Notes under the pieces: generated by a model | The model's database searches: none | Seen by the model: only the letters and a program-made list of their open reading frames with translations | What the model was told of the DNA's origin: nothing | Shown here: one piece after another, positions 1,641-64,000 of the stretch | Layout of the letters: the number at the start of each line of letters is the position of its first letter | How positions within the stretch are numbered: position 1 is the first letter of the stretch | NCBI RefSeq assembly: GCF_006345805.1 | Contig: NC_043017.1 | Span: 26,102,001 to 26,166,000 of the forward strand | Length of the DNA: 64,000 nt | DNA from: Octopus sinensis | Lineage: Eukaryota | Direction of reading: 5' to 3' | Position numbers and translations under genes: made by a program

Positions 1641-2225
1641 ACATTCAATCTACTCGCCATTAATACTACCACGACACTGGACACACACACACACTACTAC
1701 TCAACACACGCTGGCACCCCTTCCCCTTCCCCTTCCCCTCCCTCCCTTCCTCCTTCCTTATTTTTCTTACTACTGACCTTTGTCTGCTATGCTGACCAAT
1801 GTCTCGCCCTACCTCACACGCCTACACACAGACGCACACACTAACACATACATATATTTTTGTTTTTTTTATCTCGCCTCACACACACACATACACACAC
1901 GCACACGCACACACTCACACATACACACACATCTCTTGCGTTACCAACCTTGTTTCCACTCTTTTGCCTTTAAAAAACCTACTTTGCTCTTGTTATCGTA
2001 AACATCCGCCTTTCACCATGTGTAACTCGTAAACACCAGTCGTTTTTTTCTTATCCCTGTTGCCCGCTCTGGGATCTTTCTTTCCTCTCTCTTCCTTCTT
2101 TATGTTTCCGACGAAGAGCTCCGCTCGAAACGTCATACCTCCCTGCTTCCATTCCTGAGCGCCTATTAATAATAATACTGTAATTGTTCCATTGTTGTTG
2201 TTTTTTTGTTTCCCGTTTGGATAAA
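1430..2225 (+). mobile_element. Decayed, internally deleted Penelope-like element remnant (linker fragment + pLTR-like end)
   Basis: Frame-switched peptide DETSRPFLGPSLVVGF/PRPSPRDHSSIFP resembles the PLE RT-EN linker (recalled ...FRRPxSLRDxLVHS); 2040-2225 is homologous to 60651-60715 + 63267-63415 and carries a hammerhead-like motif. Confidence 0.5.
2104..2138 (+). ncRNA. Degenerate minimal type I hammerhead ribozyme motif
   Basis: gttt-CCGACGA-a-gagc(tcc)gctc-GAA-acgt-c-atac; U4->C core change and one stem I mismatch; paralogue of 63299-63333. Confidence 0.45.
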
Positions 2226-2231
2226 AATTAT

Positions 2232-3837: not shown

Positions 3838-4314
3838 ATGCGCCAATTTAAAGCCTAGCCAGGCACATGGGCCCAGTTTTCCGGTTTCAATGGCGTATGG
3901 GTTCCCCAGCTGGACGGGACGCCAGTCCATCGCGGCGTTACTCATTTTTGCCAGCTGAGTGGACTGGAGCAACGTGAAATGAAGTGTTTTGCTCAAGAGC
4001 ACAACGCGTCGCCCGGTCTAGGAATGGAAACCACGATCTTACGATCATGATGCTGACACCCTAACCTATTTCTTTACTACCCACAAGGGGCTAAACACAG
4101 AGGGGACAAACAAGGACAGACAAACGGATTAAGTCGATTATATTGACCCCCAGTGCGTAACTGGTACATAATTTATCGACCCCGAAAGGATGAAAGGCAA
4201 AGTCGACCTCAGCGGAATTTGAACTCAGAACGTAACGGCAGACGAAATACGGCTAGGCATTTCGCCCGGTGTGCTAACGTTTCTGCCACCCTAACCACTA
4301 AGCCACGCGTCTCC
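3838..4314 (-). mobile_element. tRNA-derived SINE with the same head type but a different body, interrupted by a second SINE
   Basis: Head tggagacgcgtggcttagtggttagggtg...; body contains gcgatggactggcgtcccgtccag; split at caccctaacc. Confidence 0.8.
4067..4286 (-). mobile_element. Abundant SINE family A (ggcagaaacgttagcac...gtcgactttgcctttcatcctttcggggtcgataaattaagtaccag) nested in the previous SINE
   Basis: 10-bp TSD caccctaacc at 4057-4066 and 4287-4296; more than 15 copies in the window. Confidence 0.9.
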
Positions 4315-5379
4315 AGATAATAAGGAAAGAACAAATAAATGTTGTGTAACGTACAGCTATCGTCTACAGTCAATAGAGTGTGGATTGTAGGTGTTCAATT
4401 GTGATGGACATAGCTTCAAAACCCCCGCAAAACGAACTCCAATCTCTGAAATAATTGTTGTGAAATTGTACAGCGTAAATTTTGTGAAACAAGAAGATAT
4501 TGACTGTGGTAGGACAGAGTAGTCGACTTAAGTGAGGACGTAGAATATCAAAACAACTAACTGCAAGAAGTAGTAATGTATTCCTTTTGTGAAATAACAA
4601 GAAATTGACAGTGCCGGGACACAGGCTGGTCGAATAAGAGATGACGCAGAACGCCATTGCAAATAAACGCATGAAAGAGCGCTGACTTGAAATAAATGCT
4701 CTGCTTCAAATCGGATATAAAATACATCGAACTATAAACGCAAACCAAGACAATACAAACTGGTATGCGCGTTTGTTATGAAACATAAAATCCCTGTAAG
4801 AACAAAGCCGAGATCACAAACAATCTTAACAAAAGAAGACGGGCGTTATATATGAATTTCACTCGTTTCATATCCATTCATAGTCTTGCAGTAAATTTAA
4901 ACATCAAACTTCATGAACGAAAATACACAGAAATAAACGAATGAATCATTACATAGCGTAAAAACGCATTATATTAGAAGGCAATATAAATAATTTCATA
5001 GTAATTCCATTGTTTGGATTACTTGTTTTACAACATTTCTCCATCTTATAAAGTTCTCATTTGATTTGCCACATTCTAGATGCTCTTCGATGTTTCATGA
5101 TTAACTTTGGCTTTGTTCTTAGGTGCTGTAAACAAACAACATATCCTAATTACTATATTTTAATGATATTCATTACTGCATTCCTGTTATTTAAGAATTT
5201 ACTCAAAGAAATCTCTCAAGGTGTGATTTATGTTGCCATGCTGGATTAGATTTAAGAGAATAAATATCGTACTTTTGAAAATGTCATTTTTGTATTTTCC
5301 TAGAATTTTTGTATTTTCCTAGAATTACATATTCGATAAAGAAATGGAAACGTAAATTTGCATCCTTTATTTATTATAT

Positions 5380-14248: not shown

Positions 14249-14759
14249 CTAGCAGTATCGCCCGGCGTTGCTCGGTTTGTAAGGGAAATAACTATATAAG
14301 CATTTTAGAGAGTTACTTCCCTTATAGATGCCAATTCGGGCTTTCTTAGCCATTTCTGTTTTGGTGTCTTCAAGCCATGAAGTCGTTGTTCTAAAAGAAC
14401 GCTGGTCTCCTTGACAACGCTTTACGACGTTGATTTCCTTACACTCCCTTCCCCACAGCTTCACGAGGGAGGGAAGAAGGGGGAGAAGCAAACAGGTGCA
14501 GGTGTGACCATGGACGCCAACTCCGCCGCCATCGACACACGAAAAAATTATGCATTAAAATGGAATAAAAAATGTGTTAAATTATTTTTAAAATCGTAGA
14601 CTCATCGTAGACGCGCGCTAATACTCAGACGGGCTCGATATGAATCACGACTATAAGATACCCGAATTTGGTTAAACTGCACCGCAAAATGTGGGAGTAG
14701 TTAGGAATCTAAATCGAAGGGGACAGACACTCAAACAACTACAGTTTTATATATATAGA
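14249..14759 (+). mobile_element. Non-autonomous Helitron-like element (Lep1/HINE-like), subfamily 2
   Basis: 5' ctagcagtatcgcccggcgttgctcgg hairpin; 3' ...ttttatatatataga; flanked by A and T without TSD; matches 35469-35862. Confidence 0.75.
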
Positions 14760-21189: not shown

Positions 21190-21370
21190 ACTACCCTCAA
21201 GGGGCTAAACTACATCGACCCCAGTGCGTAACTGGTACTTAATTTATCGACCCAGAAAGGATGAAAGGCAAAGTCGACCTCGGCGGAATTTGAACTCAGA
21301 ACATAGCGGCAGACGAAATACAGCTATGCATTTCGCCCGGCGTGCTAACGATTCTGCCAGCTCGCCGCCT
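21190..21370 (-). mobile_element. SINE family A copy (second degenerate copy at 21740-21885)
   Basis: Core motif match. Confidence 0.85.
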
Positions 21371-21887
21371 TATAAATTCTTGATTAACTTTTTGGGTTAT
21401 GACTTATAATTTTCTTGATTTACCTTTTGGGTTATGACTTATAATTTTCTTGATTAACCTTTTGGGTTATGACTGAGGAGCGCTTCCTTGTATGGTTTAG
21501 TCGAAGAAATCGATTCCGGTATTTAGTTTATTTCGACCCAAACCACATAATTTCGGTTTCTTTTGCCAAAACGCTAAAACCCAACAACATTCTAAAATTG
21601 TCATGGTCGAGAAAGACGAACGACACGCGCAAAAATGCGATAGGCTTCATTGCGTATCTGTCCACAAAAAAACACTCGGGAGGTATAGGTTAGCCCTTTG
21701 GCTCTTGTAGGATATGCTTGCCCAAGTTTCAGTAGGTAACATCGACCCAAGGTACTTATCTGGTACTTAATTTATCGACCCCGGAAATTTGAATGGCAAA
21801 GTCGACCTCAGCAGACTTTGAACTCAGAATAAAGCGATGGGTGAAATACCGCCTAGAGTTCTAACGATTCTGCCAGGACACCGCCTT

Positions 21888-25790: not shown

Positions 25791-25937
25791 ATTCTAATAT
25801 TCAAAATAAGCACGGCTGCGAGCTACAATAAACGTTAGTACGCCGGGCGACTGGGGTCGATCTAATCGACTGCCCCCCTACCCCGAAAAATCTCGGGTCT
25901 TATGCCTAGAGTTGAAAAGAATATTTAAAATAGTCAA

Positions 25938-26145
25938 GGCGGCGTGCTGGAAGAAACGTTAACATGCCAGGCGAAATGCATTGCGTAATTTCGTCTTTCT
26001 TTATGTTCTGAGTTCGAATTCCACCGAGGTCGACTTTGCCTTTCATCTTTTCGGGGTCGATAAATTAAATACCAGTTGCGTATTGGTGTCGATGTAATCG
26101 TCTGTTCCCCTCCCCACAGATATCTGAACTTGTGCCGAGAATAAA
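25938..26145 (+). mobile_element. SINE family A copy
   Basis: ggcggcgtgctggaagaaacgttaac...gtcgactttgcctttcatcttttcggggtcg. Confidence 0.85.
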
Positions 26146-26544
26146 AATGAAATTTTTAAAAATCATATGATGCTCTTATTATGTACCTTATGAATTGGAT
26201 ATTAAGTTCTGCTTTCAAAATTTCCTTTGGCCAATATTGCGGTATTGACTTGGAAACACGCTGTAACAAGGACTAAACTATTTACCATATTGCAAATTCA
26301 AAGCAACGATATTTCACAAATAAAGCACAAATAAACTCATTACTTTATTGCTTTAACATGAACCTCCACCCATATCGCCCCAATTTTTTATATGAATAGC
26401 TACCCCATTATAGCTTAAATATTCTTCAATGCCCCCCTTGGAAATGTCCACTGTCGCCACATGGGAAATGGCACCCACATTAGGAACTACTGCCTTAGAT
26501 CATGGATCTTCCCGATTCAGACTGATTCGGATGTAAAATACAGC

Positions 26545-26949
26545 AAAGTATTGTTTTCAAATTTCGGAACAACGGTAATTTGATTACATCGACCGCGGTG
26601 TGCAACTCTTACAAATTTTATGGACCCTGGAAGGACGAAAGGCGAATTCTAACTTGGTGAGATTTGATCATTAATCGTAAGGTCGCAATAGGTGTGCTAA
26701 CAGTTGTGGCAACCCCAAGTATTAAACACTGCAAAATATTGCTAGAAAGTATTGTTTTCAAATTTCGGTACAACGGTAATTTGATTACATCGACCGCGGT
26801 GTGCAACTCTTACAAATTTTATGGACTCTGGAAGGACGAAAGGCGAAGTCGACCTTGGTGAGATTTGATCATTAATCGTAAGGTCGCAATAGGTGCGCTA
26901 AAAATTGTGGCAACCCCAAGTCTTAAACACTGCAAAATATTGCTAGAAA
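26545..26949. repeat. 201-bp tandem duplication containing an old SINE A remnant
   Basis: aaagtattgttttcaaatttcgg starts at 26545 and 26746. Confidence 0.9.
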
Positions 26950-27396: not shown

Positions 27397-27770
27397 GCAG
27401 TATCGCCGGCGTTGCTCAGGTTTGTAAGGGAATAACTATAAAGCATTTTAGAGATTATAGCCAAAAATAGCCAAAAAATGGAAAAAAAATGATGGTAAAT
27501 TTTTTTTTGAGAGTATAAAAGGTTGAGTTGCGTCCCCTAGACAGTCTGTGGTTTGTTTTTTTTTATTCTCGACCCCATGTCGAATTTATCGTTTTTTTCA
27601 GACTGGGGAACTTTTCAAAATTTTCGCTGCGTTATTTTGAATTATGACATTGGGCTATGTGTGTGTCAAGTTTCATCAAATCGGTTGAAAGCCGTGGTCA
27701 GGGTGAGGGACGAGAAAACAGACACACAGAAAACACGCACAGGACAAACTGCCGTTTATATAGAGAGAGA
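27397..27770 (+). mobile_element. Non-autonomous Helitron-like element, subfamily 1
   Basis: Highly similar to 60716-61081 and 62905-63266. Confidence 0.8.
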
Positions 27771-35468: not shown

Positions 35469-35862
35469 TCTTTATATATAAAAGTGAGGTTGTGTGCTGT
35501 CTGTCTCCTACGATTTAGATTCCTAACTACTCCCACATTTTGCGGTGCAGTTTAACCAAAACCGGGTATCTTATAGTCGTGATTCATATCGAGCCCTTCT
35601 GGGTATTAGCGCGCGTCTACGATAAGTCTACGATAAAAAAAAATTACCATCAATTTTTCCCATTTTTAATGCATTTTTGGCATATATAAGGGAAGTAACT
35701 CTCTAAAAATGTATTATGAAATCTCAGAACGTAAAAAGCTACAGTAACACCCACCCCTTTCTGGTTAGCCATACTGAGATGGCTATTATACTTTACATCA
35801 CTAAAAATGCTTATATAGTTATTTCCCTTACAAACCCGAGCAACGCCGGGCGATACTGCTAG
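35469..35862 (-). mobile_element. Non-autonomous Helitron-like element, subfamily 2
   Basis: Reverse-complement match to 14249-14759 with conserved ends. Confidence 0.75.
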
Positions 35863-40637: not shown

Positions 40638-40831
40638 ATACCTTAAGGATGTATCTCCGCCGGTCTCTCGTACAGAACCTCAGTTTAGAGAAAGTATGTT
40701 TTATGGTAGACTCAAACCATTTAGGAGTTTTATACATACCTTAAGGCTGTATCTCCGCCGTCTTCCGTACGGAACCTCACTTTAGAGAAAGTATTTTGGA
40801 TGGTAGACTCAAACCATTTAAGGGTTTTATA
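40638..40831. repeat. 98-bp tandem duplication
   Basis: ataccttaagg...ctcaaaccattta starts at 40638 and 40736. Confidence 0.85.
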
Positions 40832-43029: not shown

Positions 43030-43650
43030 CCATGACGCAATTCACTCCACCAGAAATTTGGAAACGACTTACTGTACTGCTTGGCATTCGCATCGGAAGA
43101 TCCAATACGAACATTTCAGAGTGTTTGTGTTTCAATGTGTGTAAAGCGTAATCTGAGATCATGTACCGAGATTGATGAAAATGAAACATCCAGTCAACCT
43201 TATGGAGTTTGGAGCGATCATTATTGATGACAATCTTATGCCTCCTTTCATCTTCTCACTCGGCCTCACATTCAACACGGAGGCCTATATCTGGGGCTTG
43301 GAAGTGATAGTGCTGCGCTGGGGGAAGAGGGTAGCTGGTGGAAGAGCCTATGTCTAGCAACAGGACTCTGCACTATGACACACAAGCAGAAGAAACTAGT
43401 CTCGGCTGTCAGACAATTTCTGCGACCACTTCACACTTGACATTTATCCACACAGCTCCCCATACTGCAATCCCCTTGAGTAGTATGTGTGGGGTGCAGG
43501 TGAGCGAGAAACCGACAAAACTCTTTGAACGACCAACATTAAACTAAAGGCAAGGATTATGACAAGATTCGCCATCTTAAACAAGGAGACCGCCAAGAAG
43601 TGTTGCAGGAGATTCCGAAGCCACCTGGAGTCCTTGGTTGATTGAATAAA
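43030..43650 (+). pseudogene. Decayed maT (DD37D) Tc1/mariner-superfamily transposase, internally deleted
   Basis: KHPVNLMEFG...PPFIF...QQDSAL*HTSRRN*SRLSDNFCDHFTLDIYPHSSPYCNPLE*YVWG; 37 codons between the second D and the third catalytic position (here E); stop codons. Confidence 0.85.
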
Positions 43651-45262: not shown

Positions 45263-45744
45263 CATATATGTATGATGTGGATGCGAAGATATATGTGTGT
45301 GTGTGTGTGTCTATGTGCACGTGGTGTAGTTTTGCGCATGACTACATACACACAAATATATCTACAAGCAGAAATGTAAGTGTGGCCGCTCAGTGTCACT
45401 AAATCTATTGAAATAGTAAAGATATACCAGTAGAAACTAAACTGCCTCCTAAATAAGATGCGAATCAAACCCTGATCCTTTACTACCCACAGAGAGGACA
45501 AACAAGAACAGACAAACGGATTAAGTCGATTATATCGACCCCAGTGCGTAACTGGTACTTATTTAATCGACCCCTAAAGGATGAAAGGCAAAGTCGACCT
45601 CGGCGGAATTTGAACTCAGAACGTAGCGGCAGACGAAATACCGCTAAGCATTTCGCCCGGCGTGCTAACGTTTCTGCCAGCTCGCGAATCAAACTCGTGA
45701 CAGCAAAAAGTAGGTGTAATCCTAAAGCGTTCTCTTCATTTGTA

Positions 45745-46873
45745 CGAGGTGGTATGAAAAAATTCCAGGACCAGTTATGTTTGATAAACAATAAGTTATT
45801 TACTCAGGTTTCAGCATGAACTCCTTCGAAATTGTCATTTTCTGTAAAAATACACCGGTTCTAGTGTTCCTGCCACTTTTGAAATCCAATCTGGGTGTCG
45901 CTTTGCGTTAGCGAGTCGACGACCATTTGCTTCCCGCTCTGGATCTCGACAATGGTGTTAAAACAGCGCCCTTTGAGCTGCTTTTTCCTTTTGGGGAAGA
46001 GATGGAAACTTGCGGTGCTACAATCTTCAGAATAGAGATTGTGCGAAAGCGATACCAATTTGTAGCGAGAAACTCACAAGCAAGGAGAGCTCGGCGACAG
46101 AGTACATTGTCGTAGTGAAGAACCCAATTTTTCGCTCCCTATTGATACGGTCGCTTTCCCCGATTGTCCTCCCTCAAACACTTTAAAACGTTGCAGCACA
46201 ACTCTCCATTGACGGTCTGGGCCTGGGGGGGGGGATGAATTTTCAATACTCAATACCGTGGACGTCGAAAAACACGATGAGCAGGGTCTTGATCAAGCTG
46301 CATCGTTTGAAGCATCCGGGTCACACGAAACATTGCGCACAAGACGGCGAGCTGGCAGAAACGTTAGCACGCCGGGTTTAGCGGTATTTCATCTGCCGTT
46401 ACGTTCTGAGTTCAAATTCCGTTCTGAGTTCAATTCTGCCGAGGTGGAAGATGCCTTTCATCCTTTCAGGGTGGATAAATTAAGAACCAGTTACGCACTG
46501 GGGTTGATGTAATCGACTTAATCCCTTTGTCTGTCTTTGTTTTCCCCTCTATGTTTGGCCCCTTGTGGGCAATAAAGAAATAAGAAACATTGCGTACGAC
46601 CGATAGCCCCATCGCCCTAAGCTTGCTGAAGCATGTTCAATGACTCTGTATCCGACTTCAAAATTTTAACGTGAAATTTCACGTCAGCCCTTTGTTCCAA
46701 CATAACAAAAATCGCTTTCTACAGGCTACATGAGTTCACAAAAATCTCAAATCTCACAACACGGCACACCGCTTCCTGAAGGTCACTACTAGCTCTCACT
46801 CCGCACAAAATCGCGTGCTTCCATCTGCTGGTGCGCTACAGAACTAGTCCTGGAAGTTTTCGATACCACATCG
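45745..46873 (-). mobile_element. Internally deleted mariner with both TIRs, TA TSDs and a nested SINE
   Basis: ta|cgaggtggtatgaaaaaattccaggac ... gtcctggaagttttcgataccacatcg|ta; ORF 45861-46058 YSEDCST/FHLFPKRKKQLKGRCFNTIVEIQ is a degenerate YSPDLAP C-terminus. Confidence 0.85.
46341..46583 (+). mobile_element. SINE family A nested in the mariner
   Basis: 14-bp TSD gaaacattgcg(c/t)ac at 46327-46340 and 46584-46597. Confidence 0.9.
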
Positions 46874-53774: not shown

Positions 53775-54308
53775 GGAGGGCGTAAGTAGATTAGATTGAC
53801 CCCAGCGTTTAACTGGTACTTATCTTATTGACCTTGAACATATAATTAAGACAAAGTCAACCTACGCTGAAATTGAACTCCTAACGTGAAGACGAGTGAA
53901 ATATATGTTTCTTTAATACCCACAAGGGGCTAAACATAGAGGGGACAAACGGATTAAGTCGATTATATCGGCTCCAGTGAGTAACTGGTGCTTTTTTAAT
54001 CGACCCCGGAAGAATGAAAGGCAAAGTCGACCTCAGCGGAATTTGAACTCAGAACGTAACGGTAGACGAAATACCTATTTCTTTATTACCCACAAGGGGC
54101 TAAACACAGAGGGAACAAACAAGGACAGACAAACGGATTAAGTCGATTACATCGACCCCAGTGTATAACAGGTACTTATTTAATCGACCCCGGAAGGATG
54201 AAAGGCAAAGTCGACCTCAGCAGAATTTGAACTCAGAACGTAACGGCAGACGAAATACCGGTAAGCATTTTGCCCGGCGTGCTAACGTCTCTGCCAGCTA
54301 TCCGCCTT
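53775..54308 (-). mobile_element. Three head-to-tail SINE family A units
   Basis: cccacaaggggctaaaca recurs at ~53920 and ~54090; only the last unit keeps the 5' head. Confidence 0.85.
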
Positions 54309-54481
54309 ACACAATTGAAATATTCGATTTAGTATTCTGTTGTTCAAAAAGTTTTTCTTATTCAATGCGTTTTTTTAAACAAATCTTAGAAAATCCATTT
54401 TATACAGAATATAGGAAATCTATAGAAATGCGTATTGAAAGAACAGTTCCTGATAAAGCATTAAGTATTATGTATGTATGT

Positions 54482-54527
<46 letters not shown>

Positions 54528-56199
54528 CACCATGTGTCCGATTGCGTTATATTTGAAATTTCAGGAATATGGACGTCAAGTTTTATAATTTTTTTGCGCA
54601 AATATATACCTGATTAGATCGAAGAATATACTTCTCAAAACTTCCTTTATGCTACTTAAATGTCCTTAACTGTAGATACGTAAAATTAATACACTATATA
54701 CAGTATCTATGAATATATGATAAAACATGTATGTATATTTGGCGATAATGGTGTGGATTGGTAGTATTGAGTAAATTGGAAGAAAAAAATCTAGTCAAAC
54801 TTGAATGGATTGTATTGTTGAACGAAATACAAACACATAGGAACCTCACTCAACGACACAGCCTATTATGCGTGTATTTTATTTTTTCGCTTATTCAGTA
54901 CTCGCATCCTCTACAATGAAAAGGGCCAAGACGTACTATGCCATGAATACTTCAAGATTTTTTTTTTTTTTCAGTATAATATCTGAACTAATATTGGTTT
55001 GGCTAACAATGCCTCTATGTATGATTATATGTTAAGATGACAGTCGTGAATAGATATAATACTGAAACAAAATAATAATCGCAGTTTGGTCATCTGGTGC
55101 AATAACGCATTAACTTTCAAAGACGTAGGGTATATTGACCATTATTCTATACGCATCTTTGCTTAACGTTTGTTGTTTACTCTACGTAACACAATGGTAC
55201 ATAAAGAATATTTACTGTGTAAAAATACAGCGTAACAATGAATGAAGATTCCAATGTAATTATGCGGCTATTTATGTTATATTCAGTTTACTGTTTGTTA
55301 AACATAATAAAGTGCACTTACTAACAGGAATCAAGAACATTAATGAAACAAATGCGAAGTAATAATGAATCAAAAGAGATATTTTATATTCAAACATGGC
55401 GGATGAAGGACATATTGAAATATGTGTAATGGAACAGATTATAAAAGATAGAAAAAGAATGTTTAACTCCAAAACGAACAATGAAAAATAATAACGGTTT
55501 GTTATTGCAACATTGTACAAGAGAATTGTTTGAATTGACAACTTAGCATTTCATTTTTACTCGATTTCATAATTATTATTCCATAGCAAAAATAGAAATA
55601 ATTTTATTTTGATATGTTTCGTTAAAGGAAACAAATAGAAGATAAATCTCTTTATATTGTTGTGTTCATTTTAACTACGACAGGAGCGCAATGATAGGTC
55701 TATTAGGTATTACTTACTAGAAATAGCAACTAAGCATCTCACTCATAACAAGACGCCCTCTTGAAATGCCGAACGGAGGCTAAAATGCAAGAAAATAAAA
55801 CATACATGAGGCCTCTAAATTGTCCTTCAATCTACTACACACATTAAACAATTCATTTTCAAAACAAAAGACACCGTCTTCAAATAGTGGAAAGCTACCC
55901 CGGGTGATATAGCCATTAATATACTAAAAGTGAATCGTCTATTTTATTTATTTAGTCAAATGTACGGGTGAACATGGTAACTGTCAAAACGAAATACGTA
56001 AGCTTAAATCAAAATGGAACAATGAATGGGGTACACCTCTCAACTGTGTAAAAGACTTTATTTACTTACCTGAGTAGTAAAATCTGTAGCTGCAAAAGTG
56101 ATGCACTAGTAAATCATTGGGTGCTGTAGACAAGCTATAAATGGTTACGGAAGGTAGACTTCTATATAATATGAAGAAATGTACCTCTTTCAAGCAGAT

Positions 56200-56490
56200 G
56201 TACCTCTGTTCTACTGCGTGACTCTTCAGCCGGGCACTTATTCCAAATTTGAAAGAAAACTGGATGTCGCCAACACTTTCATTCTAAGAGTGGCTTTGAA
56301 CGCCACCGGGAAAGATTGTCTTACGAATGATCAATTTTTATGGGAAATTTCGTTCAGGATCAGACGCGACATTATCAGAGAACGTCGCGTCAGTTTCGCA
56401 GGGTATTGCTAGCGGGCTGAAGACGAATTTCTAAGTGAAATTATTTTGTGGGAGCATCCACAAAGAAGAGCTAGCAGGGGGGGGGACAAG
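56200..56490 (+). pseudogene. Old RTE-type LINE fragment (same subtype as 25018-25270)
   Basis: ERKLDVANTFILRVALNATGKDCLTN...IIRERRVSFAGYC*R...IILWEHP. Confidence 0.65.
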
Positions 56491-56499
56491 CAGATTTAT

Positions 56500-57075
56500 G
56501 GTGATATATACTGGAATAAATCGAGATGGTGACTGCACTCCAGAAATAAGACGGTGGAGAGGCAATGGTCAGCATGAGCAGGGTCAAGAAGATTAGAGAC
56601 ATCAGACGCGCTACCAAATGCAGATTGGTGAATGCAATTGTCTTCCCAATAGCAACATATGGATGCGAGACCTGGACACTAAAGAAAGCTGACCAGAAGA
56701 GAATTAATGTATTCGAGCTTTGGTGTTGGAGAAGACTTTTACGGATTCCATGGCCAGCGAGGCTCACCAATGGAGAAGTTCTTAAGCAGATCAGGCCGAA
56801 AATGTCGCTAGAAGCTAGGATCACCACGCATAGATTGGCATATTTCGGGCATATTATGCAGAGGAAATCCCTGGATAAAGACATCATGCTCGAAATGGTC
56901 AGTGGCAAGAGAGGAAGAGGCCGACCAAGAACCCGCTGGCTTGACACCATCAAGAGTGATACCGGAATGGACATAGCCAGTCTGAAAGAAGCGGCCCAGG
57001 ATAGAACTGACTGGAGACACTGATCCAACGAGTAACCGAGAGTCGACTTCGACTGAGCGGATAGATTGATAGATA
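56500..57075 (+). pseudogene. RTE (BovB-like) LINE RT C-terminal fragment with GATA-like tail
   Basis: RLVNAIVFPIATYGCETWTLKKADQKRINVFELWCWRRLLRIPW...RLAYFGHIMQR...RGRGRPRTRWLD; diagnostic RTE YGCETW/FGHI/RGRP motifs. Confidence 0.9.
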
Positions 57076-58099
57076 CTGGAATCACTCTGGCCTATCGAAC
57101 ACGATGAATAATAGAACTGGATAGCGACATAGATTTGCGATAATCCGGGAAAACAGTGTGTCATTTAAAATAAATAGATACCAATTGTATCTCTAGGGAC
57201 ATAGATACTGTCGTTAGGATTCGATATGGAGCAAAACGGCGAAGATGACGACAGTATCAACAAAATAAACGGCGAATTCTAGAATTTTAATTTGCTAACG
57301 AAAGATAACAAAATATCTGAAGTAATAACTATAGTCGTTTATTTAATCAATCGGATCCACAGTGCCATAAATTCATGTAATATTATTGTTGTTTTATTAA
57401 TCATTTATATGAAGACTGGGAAATTAATGAATTATTACACGCGAGGGAATTACTGGAACAAACTAAATCAATATTAAATAAGCATTCTCTTTAGAACTAA
57501 ACACGCAGAAAAATAGAAATTGTAAATGAAATTGAAAATACTAGAAATGATTTGAAAGTATAAAAAAATAACATAAATGATATATTGTATTCAGCTATCT
57601 TATGTGTGTGCAAATGTGTTTTTATGTGTGTGCGTGTGCTTGCGTGTGTGTATGTGTGTGTGTGTGTGGAAAGAGAGAATAATCTGATAGGTAAAAAGTT
57701 GGGTAAAATTTAGTTTTTTTAATATCATTAATATATGGAATAATACATCGAAAATAATGTCGGACAAACATAATTTTACTTTTCATGATCTAGAGAAATT
57801 AAAGTTGATATATAGAGATGGTCATAGCTGGATTGTTTTTAATCATAAATTTGCTTCCACCAGGATGACACCTGGAATAATTAACAACATCAAACACGTG
57901 TAGAAATATGGGAAAGCTTCTAGTTGAAATCTCGATAGCCAAGGAATAGTAGGAGAGAAATTTATGACTTTATTAGAAACTACATGAGAACAAAATGTTG
58001 CTTGTAGATGTCTTACGTTAAACTTGATAAACTAGAAATAAATTTCTAAATTACTATTTTGGTTATATTGTTTGCCCCAAATTATTCAGAATATGGTAG

Positions 58100-58480
58100 T
58101 TATAAGATCAAATGTCAGGCCATTAAGAAAGAAAAGTCCGATTTTCTTATGCACCAAGTTTGACAGTCATGAACTCTAATGTTTTATCCTGACAATTCTT
58201 TGTGTTACAATACTGAAGAGATACATCATCCCTTTTCGAAGTGCTATTCGTGGAGTCTGATTATATATTGTGAGCTTTCTCTTGTTAATCAATTTTTGTG
58301 AAGTCATGGATAGATCAAAAGCTCGTGTGGTTTATGTATATGAGTTCCGTCCTGTAACCAATGCATCTCGGACAGCTCGAAACATTAATGAGGTGTTTGG
58401 TGAAGATGTGGTGAATAAGTTCACTGTACGTCGATGGTTTGAGAAGTTCCGCTCTGGTAACTTTACTCTTGAAAATCGGC
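58100..58480 (+). pseudogene. Mariner transposase 5' fragment (Mos1/Hsmar1-type HTH)
   Basis: MDRSKARVVYVYEFRPVTNASRTARNINEVFGEDVVNKFTVRRWFEKFRSGNFTLEN; similarity ends after EN. Confidence 0.85.
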
Positions 58481-58819
58481 TTTGGTGGTCTGAGATTGGT
58501 ACCACTGCTGTCGGAAGCGTTGTTGTCAGAACACTAAAACCAAACAAATGCTGCATGACATTTTCCCGGAAAGGCAAGCATCTCACCACACTCCGACACA
58601 CATTATTATAAATTGCTGACTCTCTACAGATAGGATTGATAAGTATCAAAGTAGATCTTTTATAATTTTTCTTTCAACTTGATTCAGACTTTAGACTGTG
58701 ATCATGCTGCGATCATGCTGGCACCCTTAAATCCTTAAAATCCTTAAAAGTGTTATAGCCCGAAGGCCGCGGCCATGCCTGAAGAATTTTTAGTCGAATG
58801 AATTGAGGGCAATGCATAA

Positions 58820-60524: not shown

Positions 60525-60637
<113 letters not shown>

Positions 60638-60650
60638 TAAATATATATAT

Positions 60651-60715
60651 AGTTAATCCAAACATGAAAACACAAAGAGAAAACAACGCGAGTACGTGGA
60701 ACAAATATAGTATTA
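60651..60715 (-). mobile_element. Left half of the PLE-type repeat split by the composite insertion
   Basis: atccaaac...tggaacaaatatagtatta matches the reverse complement of ~2160-2225. Confidence 0.65.
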
Positions 60716-61081
60716 CTAGCAGTATCGCCCGGCGTTGCTCGGGTTTGTAAGGGAAATAACTATAAAGCATTTATAGAGAGTTATAGCCAAAAAATGGAAA
60801 AAAATGATGGTAATTTTTTTTTTAGTTAAAATGGTCGAGTTGCGTCCCCTAGACAGTCTGTGGTTTGTGTTTCTGATTCTTGACCCCATGTCGAATTTAT
60901 CGATTTTTTTCAGAACTGGGGGAACTTTTCAAAATTTTCGCTGCATTAGTTTTGAATTATGACATTGGGCTATGTGTGTGTCAAGTTTCATCAGAATCGG
61001 TTGAAAGCCGTGGTCAGGGTGAGGATTCAACCTAACACACACACAGAAACACAGACAAACTGCCGTTTATATATATAGAGA
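60716..61081 (+). mobile_element. Non-autonomous Helitron-like element, subfamily 1 (left bracket)
   Basis: a|ctagcagtatcgcccggcgttgctcggg ... gccgtttatatatatagaga|t. Confidence 0.8.
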
Positions 61082-62249
61082 TTTTCTGTATTTTTAAAGT
61101 CATTTTCCCTTTAAAATATTTTTTTAAATATGCCAAAAAAATTTTTGTAATGGTATTCACTTAAATATAATTGAAAAAACATTAAAATATTGTGTTTAAA
61201 GAAAGCTAAAATATAAATACTTACTGTACAAACAACTTAAATTTTTGAAATCACATTCACTTAAAAATATTTCTAAATGATTAAAATACTGTGTTTAACA
61301 AAAGTGAAAAATAGAAACATTTACTGTAAAAAAAAAAAACATCATATTTTTTCGTTGTCAACTCATTGTCTAATAGAAAGATAAGAGTTTTTTCCCTTTC
61401 AGGATGAAGATTATTTTCAGAACATTTTCCCATTATGCACCATTTTAGCTATTTTTACCCTGAAAATCTCTAATCTCTTGAAAACCACTTTACCGATTTG
61501 TGCAAAACTTGTTTCATTCTGTTTGTATTAAAATTTCAGGGTAACTTAATTCATAGTATTTTCCCATTATGCACCAGTTTGGTTGAGTAATACTGCAAGC
61601 AAGCAAGCAAGCAAGAATAAAACTAATTTCTAGTGTATTATAGATGGTGGATAAAGTTATTCAGAAGTGCATACAAAATAATACGATCATATTTGTATGC
61701 AGATTTGAAGGATCTTATCCAACATGGAGTACTAAAGTTACTCTGAACAACACATGGAAAGTTATCAATAGTTGCATGAATTATTACCTAACGTTGCAAG
61801 ATTGATTGCATTAAATTAAAATGCCATAATTGTAAAGTGAAGTAGTAAAATCATTTAGTCACTCTTCCTTTTATTTGTCATTATAAACACTTTATGGATG
61901 TTTGCAATTTTCAAAACATGTGTCTGGTAAATAAAATTTACAACCATATCTGATAGCCAATATTATATATATATATATAAAAGTACATATATATATATAT
62001 TTATATAAATGTAAGTAATTCGTTATGTGTTGGGTATGCTCATAGTAGTTAGCTGATAAAGCACTTTCACTGTCTATGGCTCCCTGATATCATCCATAGT
62101 ATTTACGCAATTGTCAGTGGATCTACTCAGGAATTCTTCAGTGTTTATTGAGTATATAAGAAATGATGGAGACAGAAAATAGAATATATACGAGGAACTT
62201 TATTGCTCACAATGATCATTTCAACACATCCTGCATTGATCCCTTGTAG

Positions 62250-62306
62250 GTGGGAGACTGTACAACTGGTTGTGGTGCATCATTTGGTGCAGAAGTTTTT
62301 CATCAG
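62250..62306 (+). other. Candidate 57-nt symmetric exon in the cargo (VGDCTTGCGASFGAEVFHQ in frame 0)
   Basis: Acceptor gatcccttgtag, donor cag|gtgata; all three frames open; no homology evidence. Confidence 0.35.
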
Positions 62307-62485
62307 GTGATATTATAAGGAGTATTTCATTAAATAAACTCTGTTTCCCCTTGGTTCTAATACAGCATGTTGTTACCATAGGATTAAGTCATTAGGCAGG
62401 AATGAGTTGGAATAGATTCCATTGCAATGTTGCAGACATTTGTCTATATTAGTAGTAAATCAAAGGCAGGGAGTTTAATTTACTG

Positions 62486-62535
<50 letters not shown>

Positions 62536-62611
62536 TATGGGATGAAGTGCTGAAGGATGACCTCAGAATGCTGAACCTTTCAGATGAGATGACAAAGGAC
62601 CAAGATACACT

Positions 62612-62663
62612 GTCTCTGATGAAGGGATATTATTAATAAATATCCTAGAAACAGCTGTAAGAC
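62612..62663 (+). ncRNA. Type I hammerhead ribozyme motif with intact catalytic core
   Basis: gucu-CUGAUGA-a-gggauauu(auuaaua)aauauccu-a-GAA-acagcugu-A-agac; palindromic stem III; predicted cleavage after 62659. Confidence 0.7.
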
Positions 62664-62904
62664 CATCTATCTATAAATGCTGTAATATCTATACAGCCTT
62701 GGTTTTTTATCTTATTATGCAAAAAATTCTTATAAACATATGTTGACATAGAACCAACGTTGAACCCTATATTCGCAATATTACTGAATCTGGAACTTAA
62801 CTATGGTCTGTCTATAGCACTGATTCAGCTTTACCTGATGCCTTTGGGTATCAATGACACCGTTATCTCTTATAACCTCAACTTCTCGCTACTATATATA
62901 TGTA

Positions 62905-63266
62905 CTAGCAGTATCGCCCGGCGTTGCTGAGGTTTGTAAGGGAAATAACTATAAAGCATTTTTAGAGAGTTATAGCAAAAAAAATTATGGTAAATTATTT
63001 TTGAGAGTAAAAAAGGTGGAGTTGCGTCCCCTAGACAGTTTGCGGTTTGTGTTTCTGATTCTCGACCCCATGTCGAATTTATCGATTTTTTCAGAACTGG
63101 GGGAACTTTTCAAAATTTTCGCTGCGTTAGTTTTGAATTATGACATTGGGCTATGTGTGTGTCAAGTTTCATCAGAATCGGTTGAAAGCCGTGGTCAGGG
63201 TGAGGGTACAAGCAAACAGACACACAGAAACACGCACAGACAAACTGCCGTTTATATAGAGAGAGA
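62905..63266 (+). mobile_element. Non-autonomous Helitron-like element, subfamily 1 (right bracket)
   Basis: a|ctagcagtatcgcccggcgttgc ... gccgtttatatagagagaga|t. Confidence 0.8.
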
Positions 63267-63403
63267 TTGAACGCTCAGGAAGGAAGGGAAGAAGAAGGGT
63301 TTTACGTTTCGAGCGGAGCTCTTCGTCAGAAACATATGAAAAGGAAAGATCCAGAGAAGGGAAGACGGAGGAAAAAATCGCCAACGGTACACACGCGGTC
63401 ACA

Positions 63404-63415
<12 letters not shown>
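63267..63415 (-). mobile_element. Right half of the split PLE-type repeat
   Basis: Homologous to ~2040-2165. Confidence 0.75.
63299..63333 (-). ncRNA. Minimal type I hammerhead ribozyme motif with intact core
   Basis: guuu-CUGACGA-a-gagc(ucc)gcuc-GAA-acgu-A-aaac; palindromic ACGU minimal stem III. Confidence 0.7.
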
Positions 63416-63442
<27 letters not shown>

Positions 63443-64000
63443 CATACATTCATACATATATCCAAAAATCATCTAGAAATGATCTAGTTAATTACTAAAT
63501 CTCAGAACAGTTAAAATTTCGAAATTAAAAATGTTACAAGGAATAAAGTATACGAAAATCTTTCATAAATTACCTTTGTGTAAAAGACGCTACAATCAAA
63601 TGTGAAACGTTATCTTATTTAGAGATAACACACACACACACATACACACACAGACACACACACACACACATGCACATTTATATATCCACTCATATGTACA
63701 CATCCACACGCATGTATACACTGTCGCATGAATCTACATGTTGACGCATGGAAGATTCAATCAGAATGTGTGATTTTGTTGGTTGGTAAGTGGGATATAC
63801 TTAAGCGACAAGTATAATTTTATTTTCTCCATTTCCATGTCTTCCACTGGAACAAGTGATATATAAATGTAAGATCCGGGGATCGATGTGCAGGAAGAAA
63901 GTTAGCTTCAAGCAATCAGTTATGGGATGCACCACTTTTGCTCTCGGCCTGAATTTACTAAAACTGCTCGTCTACGGTTACTAACAGCTGATTGATACAA

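Follow-up and report, generated by a model that had tools for sequence, protein, structure and literature searches.

A block of 2551 bp at positions 60716–63266 of a 64-kb stretch of the Octopus sinensis genome (assembly GCF_006345805.1, contig NC_043017.1, positions 26,102,001 to 26,166,000; this whole stretch is called the window below) looks like a compound non-autonomous Helitron. It is made of two copies of one Helitron family, copies A and B, and of the 1823 bp of passenger DNA enclosed between them. The favoured reading, to which a probability of roughly 0.6 is given here, is that the whole block moved in a single transposition, through bypass of a terminator, a process also known as read-through or end bypass. 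Such a mechanism is already known in bats and plants, and the block is another example of it, not a new mechanism.

Structure of the Block

The two copies lie in direct orientation and have quite similar lengths (Table 1). On the forward strand, the motif ctagcag begins at 60716 and again at 62905, and the motif agaga terminates at 61081 and 63266. Read on the minus strand, copy A extends from its 5′ TC (61081–61080) to its 3′ CTAG (60719–60716), and copy B from its 5′ TC (63266–63265) to its 3′ CTAG (62908–62905). The order on the Helitron sense strand is thus flank, A/TC-B-CTAG/T, passenger, A/TC-A-CTAG/T, flank, a slash marking each junction. The outer ends of the block are the 5′ TC of copy B and the hairpin and CTAG of copy A. 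The inner junctions are likewise of the A/T type, since on the minus strand T follows the CTAG of copy B and A precedes the TC of copy A.

Copies A and B are 89.8% identical over 372 columns (BLAST, E 5e-143), with 22 substitutions at 356 aligned sites, which corresponds to a Kimura two-parameter (K2P) distance of 0.064, plus 29 gap columns found mainly in runs of A or T. Their likeness is not a matter of chance, because four occurrences of the 23-nt head CTAGCAGTATCGCCCGGCGTTGC are counted in the window, for none in 100 shuffles, and because a third full copy is present at 27397–27770. The window contains no N and is hence gap-free in sequence. A previous sequence-only reading of this stretch had described two direct, highly similar copies at 60716–61081 and 62905–63266 enclosing 1823 bp, and these coordinates proved to be exact.

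Table 1. Position and main characteristics of the features discussed, in window coordinates.
Feature	Position	Strand	Characteristics and basis
Uninterrupted paralogue of the target repeat (empty-site reference)	2041..2228	+	Opposite orientation to the interrupted copy; alignment, join at ~2171–2173
Helitron copy D, second subfamily	14249–14759	-	Only the termini are common with A/B/C
Helitron copy C, third full-length member, A/B subfamily	27397–27770	-	87–88% identical to A and B (BLAST)
Helitron copy E, second subfamily	35469–35862	+	Hairpin and CTAG intact; flanked by A and T inside (TA)n
(TA)n microsatellite, left border	60525..60651	.	~63 units; Tandem Repeats Finder (TRF)
Left half of the ~200-bp target repeat	60653..60715	-	Ends ...GGAACAAATATAGTATTA at the insertion point; aligns to relative ~2225–2173
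Helitron copy A, non-autonomous	60716..61081	-	366 bp; flanked by A and T on the minus strand; without terminal inverted repeats
Copy A 3′ subterminal hairpin, intact	60728..60743	-	CCCGAGCAACGCCGGG, 6 bp, one bulge, then 8 nt and CTAG; DNA fold -4.5 kcal/mol
Passenger, non-coding	61082..62904	.	1823 bp, ~29% GC; between copies A and B
Helitron copy B	62905..63266	-	362 bp; alignment to copy A and family
Copy B hairpin, degenerate	62917..62932	-	CCTCAGCAACGCCGGG, two substitutions in the 5′ arm; fold and alignment
Right half of the target repeat	63267..63400	-	Begins TTGAACGCTCAGG; aligns to relative 2161–2041
(TA)n (63410–63438), then (ATAC)n, right border	63410..63458	.	TRF

The Paralogous Empty Site

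The block interrupts a repeat of about 200 bp, the two halves of which are found on either side of it, and an uninterrupted relative of this repeat lies near the other end of the window. A paralogous empty site of this type is a standard kind of evidence for Helitrons. When positions 60640–60715 are joined to 63267–63420, a single colinear alignment is obtained with the reverse complement of 2040–2260, with a score of 170. Removal of copy A alone lowers this score to 72 and removal of copy B alone to 115, each of these partial removals recovering only one half of the repeat. The flanks were also compared separately with the corresponding halves of the relative. Scores of 53 for the left flank (null 25 ± 4.4) and of 108 for the right one (null 33 ± 5.7) were obtained, which none of the 2000 dinucleotide shuffles reaches in either case, while both cargo edges give null-level scores against the relative. 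Since only the removal of the whole block restores colinearity, and since the cargo edges do not match the relative, these comparisons argue for the insertion of a unit. At the level of sequence, the whole 2551 bp is thus supported as an insertion relative to the paralogous empty site, in line with the earlier proposal that its removal rejoins the halves of one repeat with an uninterrupted relative.

At the join, GTATTA/TT matches GTATTATT in the relative, with no duplication. An insertion between A and T without target site duplication (TSD), as had been put forward previously, is consistent with this sequence, but the join is resolved to a few bases only, because the relative carries six extra bases just after it in an indel-rich context and the two repeat copies are about 75% alike.

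The Helitron Family and its Hallmarks

Five members of the family are found in the window, copies A and B plus copies C, D, and E. They fall into two subfamilies, A/B/C and D/E, which have only their ends in common, about 16 nt on the 5′ side and, with the hairpin and CTAG, about 58 nt on the 3′ side; their interiors are unrelated. Common termini with unrelated interiors are the usual pattern of non-autonomous Helitrons using the same transposase. Within the second subfamily, copies D and E are set apart by large internal indels.

The 5′ ends read TCT(C/A/T)T on the sense strand (minus, or plus in the case of E) in all five copies. At the 3′ end, copies A, B, D, and E terminate with ...GATACTGCTAG, which conforms to the CTRR motif, and copy C lacks the last 3 nt. 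The sense-strand 3′ terminus ...CGATACTGCTAG abuts a host T. More generally, a host A is present at the 5′ flank of the five copies, and a host T follows CTAG in the four copies where this motif is intact. No terminal inverted repeats (TIRs) were detected: comparison of the first 40 nt with the last 80 nt gives a best inverted score of 6–7, for a null mean of 5.4–5.9. This lack of TIRs distinguishes the copies both from TIR elements and from the Helentron/Helitron2 elements with their asymmetric TIRs. Judged by their sequence, copies A–E are canonical non-autonomous Helitrons of the Helitron1 type, all the structural criteria that can be tested here being in agreement. The Helitron-like character ascribed to copies A and B in the sequence-only reading is thereby supported. 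A reading of the 366-bp element as a short interspersed element (SINE) or another retroposon was considered and rejected, on account of the TC/CTAG termini, the subterminal hairpin, and the lack of a TSD on the compound unit.

None of the Helitron copies encodes anything, and no long open reading frame (ORF) of the RepHel type is found within the 64-kb window. An ORF of 138 codons (138 aa) lies over copy B and spans both its junction with the cargo and its junction with the flank; it has no Pfam match, no homologue, and no database record. Neither the Helitron 3′ head nor an internal 27-mer had an exact match when metagenome contigs were scanned.

Copy C retains an intact 5′ end (A/TCTCTC) and has lost its 3′ CTAG and hairpin together with the last 3 nt. 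The damage at this 3′ end comprises the deletion of one C and the change of a CpG to TpG. Copy C is a dead copy, which could only be moved via read-through into its own flank.

As to insertion sites, the flanks of copies B, D, and E are TA-rich, which may point to a preference of the family for (TA)n-like targets. The short TA-rich flank similarities seen near C, D, and E are of low complexity and are uninformative. Annotated Helitrons are also known from Octopus vulgaris, where an expansion is placed at a Jukes-Cantor distance of about 0.09 (PMC13282606), and the K2P distances between copies A, B, and C (0.064–0.105) are of the same range.

State of the 3′ Hairpins

The subterminal GC hairpin CCCGAGCAACGCCGGG sits 12 nt from the 3′ end in copies A and E, with the same fold in both and a predicted energy of -4.5 kcal/mol as single-stranded DNA; its z-score against shuffles is non-significant for so short a stem. 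In copy B, the family hairpin no longer forms, and the lowest-energy fold is a different and weak one (-2.6 kcal/mol, z-score +0.13). The hairpin is degraded in copies C and D as well. In their present-day state, the terminator that would have been bypassed (B) is thus without its hairpin and the one that would have been used (A) is intact. These contrasting hairpin states lend weak support to terminator bypass.

Proposed Terminator Bypass and Alternative Histories

In the scenario proposed here, two Helitrons of the same family would have inserted independently, in the same orientation and 1.8 kb apart, in another part of the genome, the donor locus. A RepHel transposase provided in trans would have cut one strand at the 5′ TC of the copy lying upstream, which is now copy B, and unwound the DNA in the 5′ to 3′ direction. 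It would have ignored the 3′ signal of copy B itself and continued through the 1.8 kb and the downstream copy, which is now copy A, up to termination at the intact hairpin and CTAG of the latter. The 2551-nt unit would then have integrated between A and T, without TSD, in the repeat of about 200 bp lying within (TA)n.

Several observations fit this proposal. A rolling-circle unit requires one start, at a 5′ end, and one stop, at a 3′ hairpin and CTAG, and the block is bounded by just such a pair, the 5′ end of copy B and the 3′ end of copy A. The A/T inner junctions and the TA-rich inner flank of copy B, which resembles the targets of copies D and E, fit separate insertions of A and B into the passenger. 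The K2P distance is 0.064 between A and B, 0.071 between B and C, and 0.105 for the third pair, so that A and B are not more closely related than B and the unlinked copy C; private changes number 16 in A and 5 in B. A recent in situ duplication of one copy is disfavoured by these distances and by the unequal numbers of private changes. We infer from the whole a single-event origin of the block, with the order of events given above, a donor locus, and an inner hairpin that would already have been defective at the time of transposition. Experimental background comes from Helraiser, a reconstructed bat element in which a 1.6-kb flank is transduced in 11.7% of events with the hairpin present and in at least 36% once it has been deleted (PMC4778049), and a natural case of the same mechanism has been published, HelibatN539 (PMC4224331).

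Some points weigh against this interpretation. One of the two hairpin changes in copy B is at a CpG and is common to copy C, and the loss may thus reflect normal decay that followed the insertion. The hairpin is damaged in about half of the copies in the window, and a match between the hairpin states and the presumed roles of A and B would be expected by coincidence in about 1 case in 4. The empty site is a paralogue of about 75% identity with indels by the join, not an allele or an orthologue. Neither a donor locus nor a second compound copy is found in the 64-kb window, and all the evidence comes from one assembly.

Arrival in one event had been suggested in the sequence-only reading, either by read-through or by recombination of a circle at a single copy. 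Read-through appears as the best reading, with outer ends that fit. The circle option is itself a two-step process. In this second type of history, a single resident Helitron would have been joined by a circle carrying transduced DNA, integrated by homologous recombination, or an ectopic Helitron-cargo-Helitron locus would have served as the template for gene conversion at a break in the resident copy. The final structure would be identical, double-stranded Helitron circles are known as intermediates (PMC4778049), and a divergence of 6% between A and B would suit chimeras formed from two distinct members of the family. Recombination nevertheless looks rather unlikely: it requires two rare events where one would do, and predicts neither which hairpin stays intact nor the A base before the TC of copy A. 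A history of two successive transpositions is distinctly unlikely. Copy A would have come first, followed by copy B with 1.8 kb of 3′-transduced flank and a de novo 3′ end, inserted between the A of the repeat and the first T of copy A. Helitrons are indeed found inserted beside other Helitrons, read-through is able to yield new 3′ ends that are free of a palindrome (PMC4778049), and the site ...CAA/TCTC would supply the A/T target. This second insertion is required, however, to hit exactly one phosphodiester bond, and both CTRR and a hairpin are missing from the presumed 3′ end, which reads ...ACAGAAAA on the minus strand. Such a history is less parsimonious than a stop at the canonical end of copy A.

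A different type of explanation is an assembly artefact, where a wrong path through the Helitron repeats would have separated the halves of the locus by foreign sequence. The region is indeed dense in repeats, with long (TA)n borders. Two misjoins returning to the same 200-bp repeat unit would be needed. Copies A and B differ at 22 sites and by several indels, and do not correspond to one collapsed node. The four junctions all fall exactly at Helitron termini with their A and T flanks, in a window without gaps. An artefact is therefore very improbable, a double misjoin being much less likely than the two preceding histories. The absence of any insertion is hardly credible. In that case, the long form would be ancestral and the sequence at 2041–2228 would be an internal-deletion derivative of a longer repeat family; that the reference is a single, divergent relative with indels by the join leaves some room for this. 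The ends of the deletion would nevertheless have to match the Helitron 5′ TC and 3′ CTAG to the base, and the block holds two copies of a family whose other members are scattered among unrelated flanks.

The Passenger DNA and the Interrupted Repeat

The passenger is AT-rich and anonymous, and nothing in it indicates a gene. Its longest stop-free stretch is 65 codons, it has no Pfam match, and, microsatellites aside, it has no other copy in the 64-kb window. The microsatellites are (GCAA)5 and the (TA)n tracts at 61960–62007 and 62489–62525. The initial wording, a foreign cargo and a route for moving gene-body DNA, finds no support in these analyses, and "foreign" can be taken here only as originating elsewhere in the same genome. 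At 61139–61335, the passenger contains a tandem duplication, imperfect (78% identity) and about 100 bp long. The segment 62530–62620 was considered as the tail of a long interspersed element (LINE) of the RTE type and was dropped, as tblastn searches with 121 RTE proteins gave no match below E = 0.4; the passenger as a whole is without similarity to these LINE proteins.

The interrupted repeat had been labelled as being of the Penelope-like element (PLE) type, and this label finds no confirmation here. The repeat has (TA)n on both sides in its interrupted copy and on one side in the relative at 2041–2228. Since (TA)n is a preferred target of several Penelope-like clades (PMC8557442), this setting is suggestive of a PLE, and non-specific. 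On its minus strand, the interrupted copy reads CUGACGA, followed by 12 nt and GAAA, which fits the relaxed hammerhead ribozyme (HHR) "core" string (CUGANGA, 12 nt, GAAA) of PMC8557442, and the relative reads CCGACGA at this position. No Rfam hammerhead match was obtained in either repeat copy, whether at the gathering threshold or at E ≤ 10. Constrained folding with the core held open gave no three-helix junction, the 30-nt block described below folding instead as a simple hairpin, GUUUC...GAAAC around a GAGC/GCUC stem. A PLE ORF, with reverse transcriptase and GIY-YIG endonuclease, adjoins neither repeat copy in the window. The repeat is left as an unclassified interspersed repeat, and its identity is irrelevant to the insertion argument. 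One part of it is far better conserved than the rest: a 30-nt block (63304–63333 and 2104–2133) is identical at 29 of 30 positions between the two copies, which are otherwise about 75% alike. Its sequence is ACGTTTCGAGCGGAGCTCTTCGTC(A/G)GAAAC, and the minus strand at 63304–63333, which resembles the hammerhead core, reads GUUUCUGACGAAGAGCUCCGCUCGAAACGU.

Other Repeats in the Window

The rest of the window is rich in repeats of various types. The 3′ part of a LINE ORF of the RTE/BovB type is found at 56435–57091. Its closest proteins, 79% identical, come from short Logan/ENA contigs of about 1 kb, and its named relatives are from frog, sheep, and lizard, the usual spread of this horizontally transferred group of LINEs. 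A mariner-type transposase remnant at 58261–58608 on the plus strand contains an HTH_48 (Mos1) domain (E 1.9e-16), and a candidate remnant of the same type, transposase-like by eye only, lies at about 43157–43354 on the same strand. A very abundant short repeat, one frame of which reads ...RNWYLIYRPRKDERQSRPRRNLNSERNGRRNT..., is seen for example at 4147–4317, 21209–21406, 25937–26155, 45457–45816, and 54104–54553. The sole database match of this frame is one ENA contig of 543 bp, and the repeat resembles the common octopod SINE.

Simple and tandem repeats are also prominent. The window opens with a degenerate (CA)n / (ACACACACACAT)n array of 1.3 kb (1–1341), which contains long spurious ORFs rich in His and Thr, and the GC skew across the first 2 kb is -0.67. 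Long arrays of 250–550 bp each, of the (AT)n, (CTA)n, (AAT)n, and (TAA)n types, are unusually dense between 10816 and 32278. Two-copy tandem repeats with long units are observed at 26545–26949 (201 bp, 95% identity) and 40638–40831 (97 bp, 88% identity). Inspection of the stop-free stretches of at least 50 codons in the window for host exons revealed only transposon-derived or low-complexity frames.

Significance and Comparison with Known Systems

The understanding of the mechanism is unchanged by this block, the value of which lies elsewhere. It provides a compact and internally controlled example of host-DNA pickup, in which a single 64-kb window comprises the passenger, its two parental ends, an inner terminator that is broken, and a paralogous empty site. 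If borne out genome-wide, it would document end-bypass capture in a lineage whose Helitrons have so far been catalogued and not dissected, and it would tie a natural event to the role of the 3′ hairpin that was shown experimentally. It is conceivable, and on present evidence quite doubtful, that the B-cargo-A unit founded, or belongs to, a new Helitron family that is amplifying in this genome, and that decayed Helitron pairs routinely shuttle kilobases of host DNA, the switch being the loss of their inner hairpin.

Related strategies are found in distant types of mobile elements. In the bacterial IS91/ISCR elements, one-ended rolling-circle transposition occurs when the HUH transposase misses the termination end and carries adjacent DNA along. 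These systems are prokaryotic, usually involve a single element, and have no sequence relation to the octopus elements. In the Tn5 and Tn10 composite transposons and in L1 3′ transduction, paired copies or a bypassed terminator likewise mobilise the DNA that lies between or beyond them. Tn5 and Tn10 rely on cut-and-paste DDE transposition with inverted insertion sequence copies, and L1 is RNA-mediated; both types generate TSDs, which are absent in the octopus block.

The closest natural counterpart is HelibatN539 of vesper bats (Thomas et al. 2014, PMC4224331), which is likewise a compound Helitron and was cited there for the end-bypass model. There, the parental locus could be identified, and what had been captured was a fragment of the KCNQ5 gene, whereas the passenger is here anonymous and non-coding. 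Unlike HelibatN539, the octopus block has kept both complete copies in the unit, and the evidence comes from a paralogous empty site. On the experimental side, the Helraiser study (Grabundzija et al. 2016, PMC4778049) has shown that the right-terminal hairpin acts as a stop signal and that, if it is missing, read-through to a downstream terminator mobilises the flank. The octopus elements resemble Helraiser in their TC...CTAG ends, and circles are intermediates in the Helraiser system. The latter work dealt experimentally with one element and with de novo 3′ ends; in the octopus block, known from its sequence alone, the downstream terminator would instead be the canonical end of a second member of the same family.

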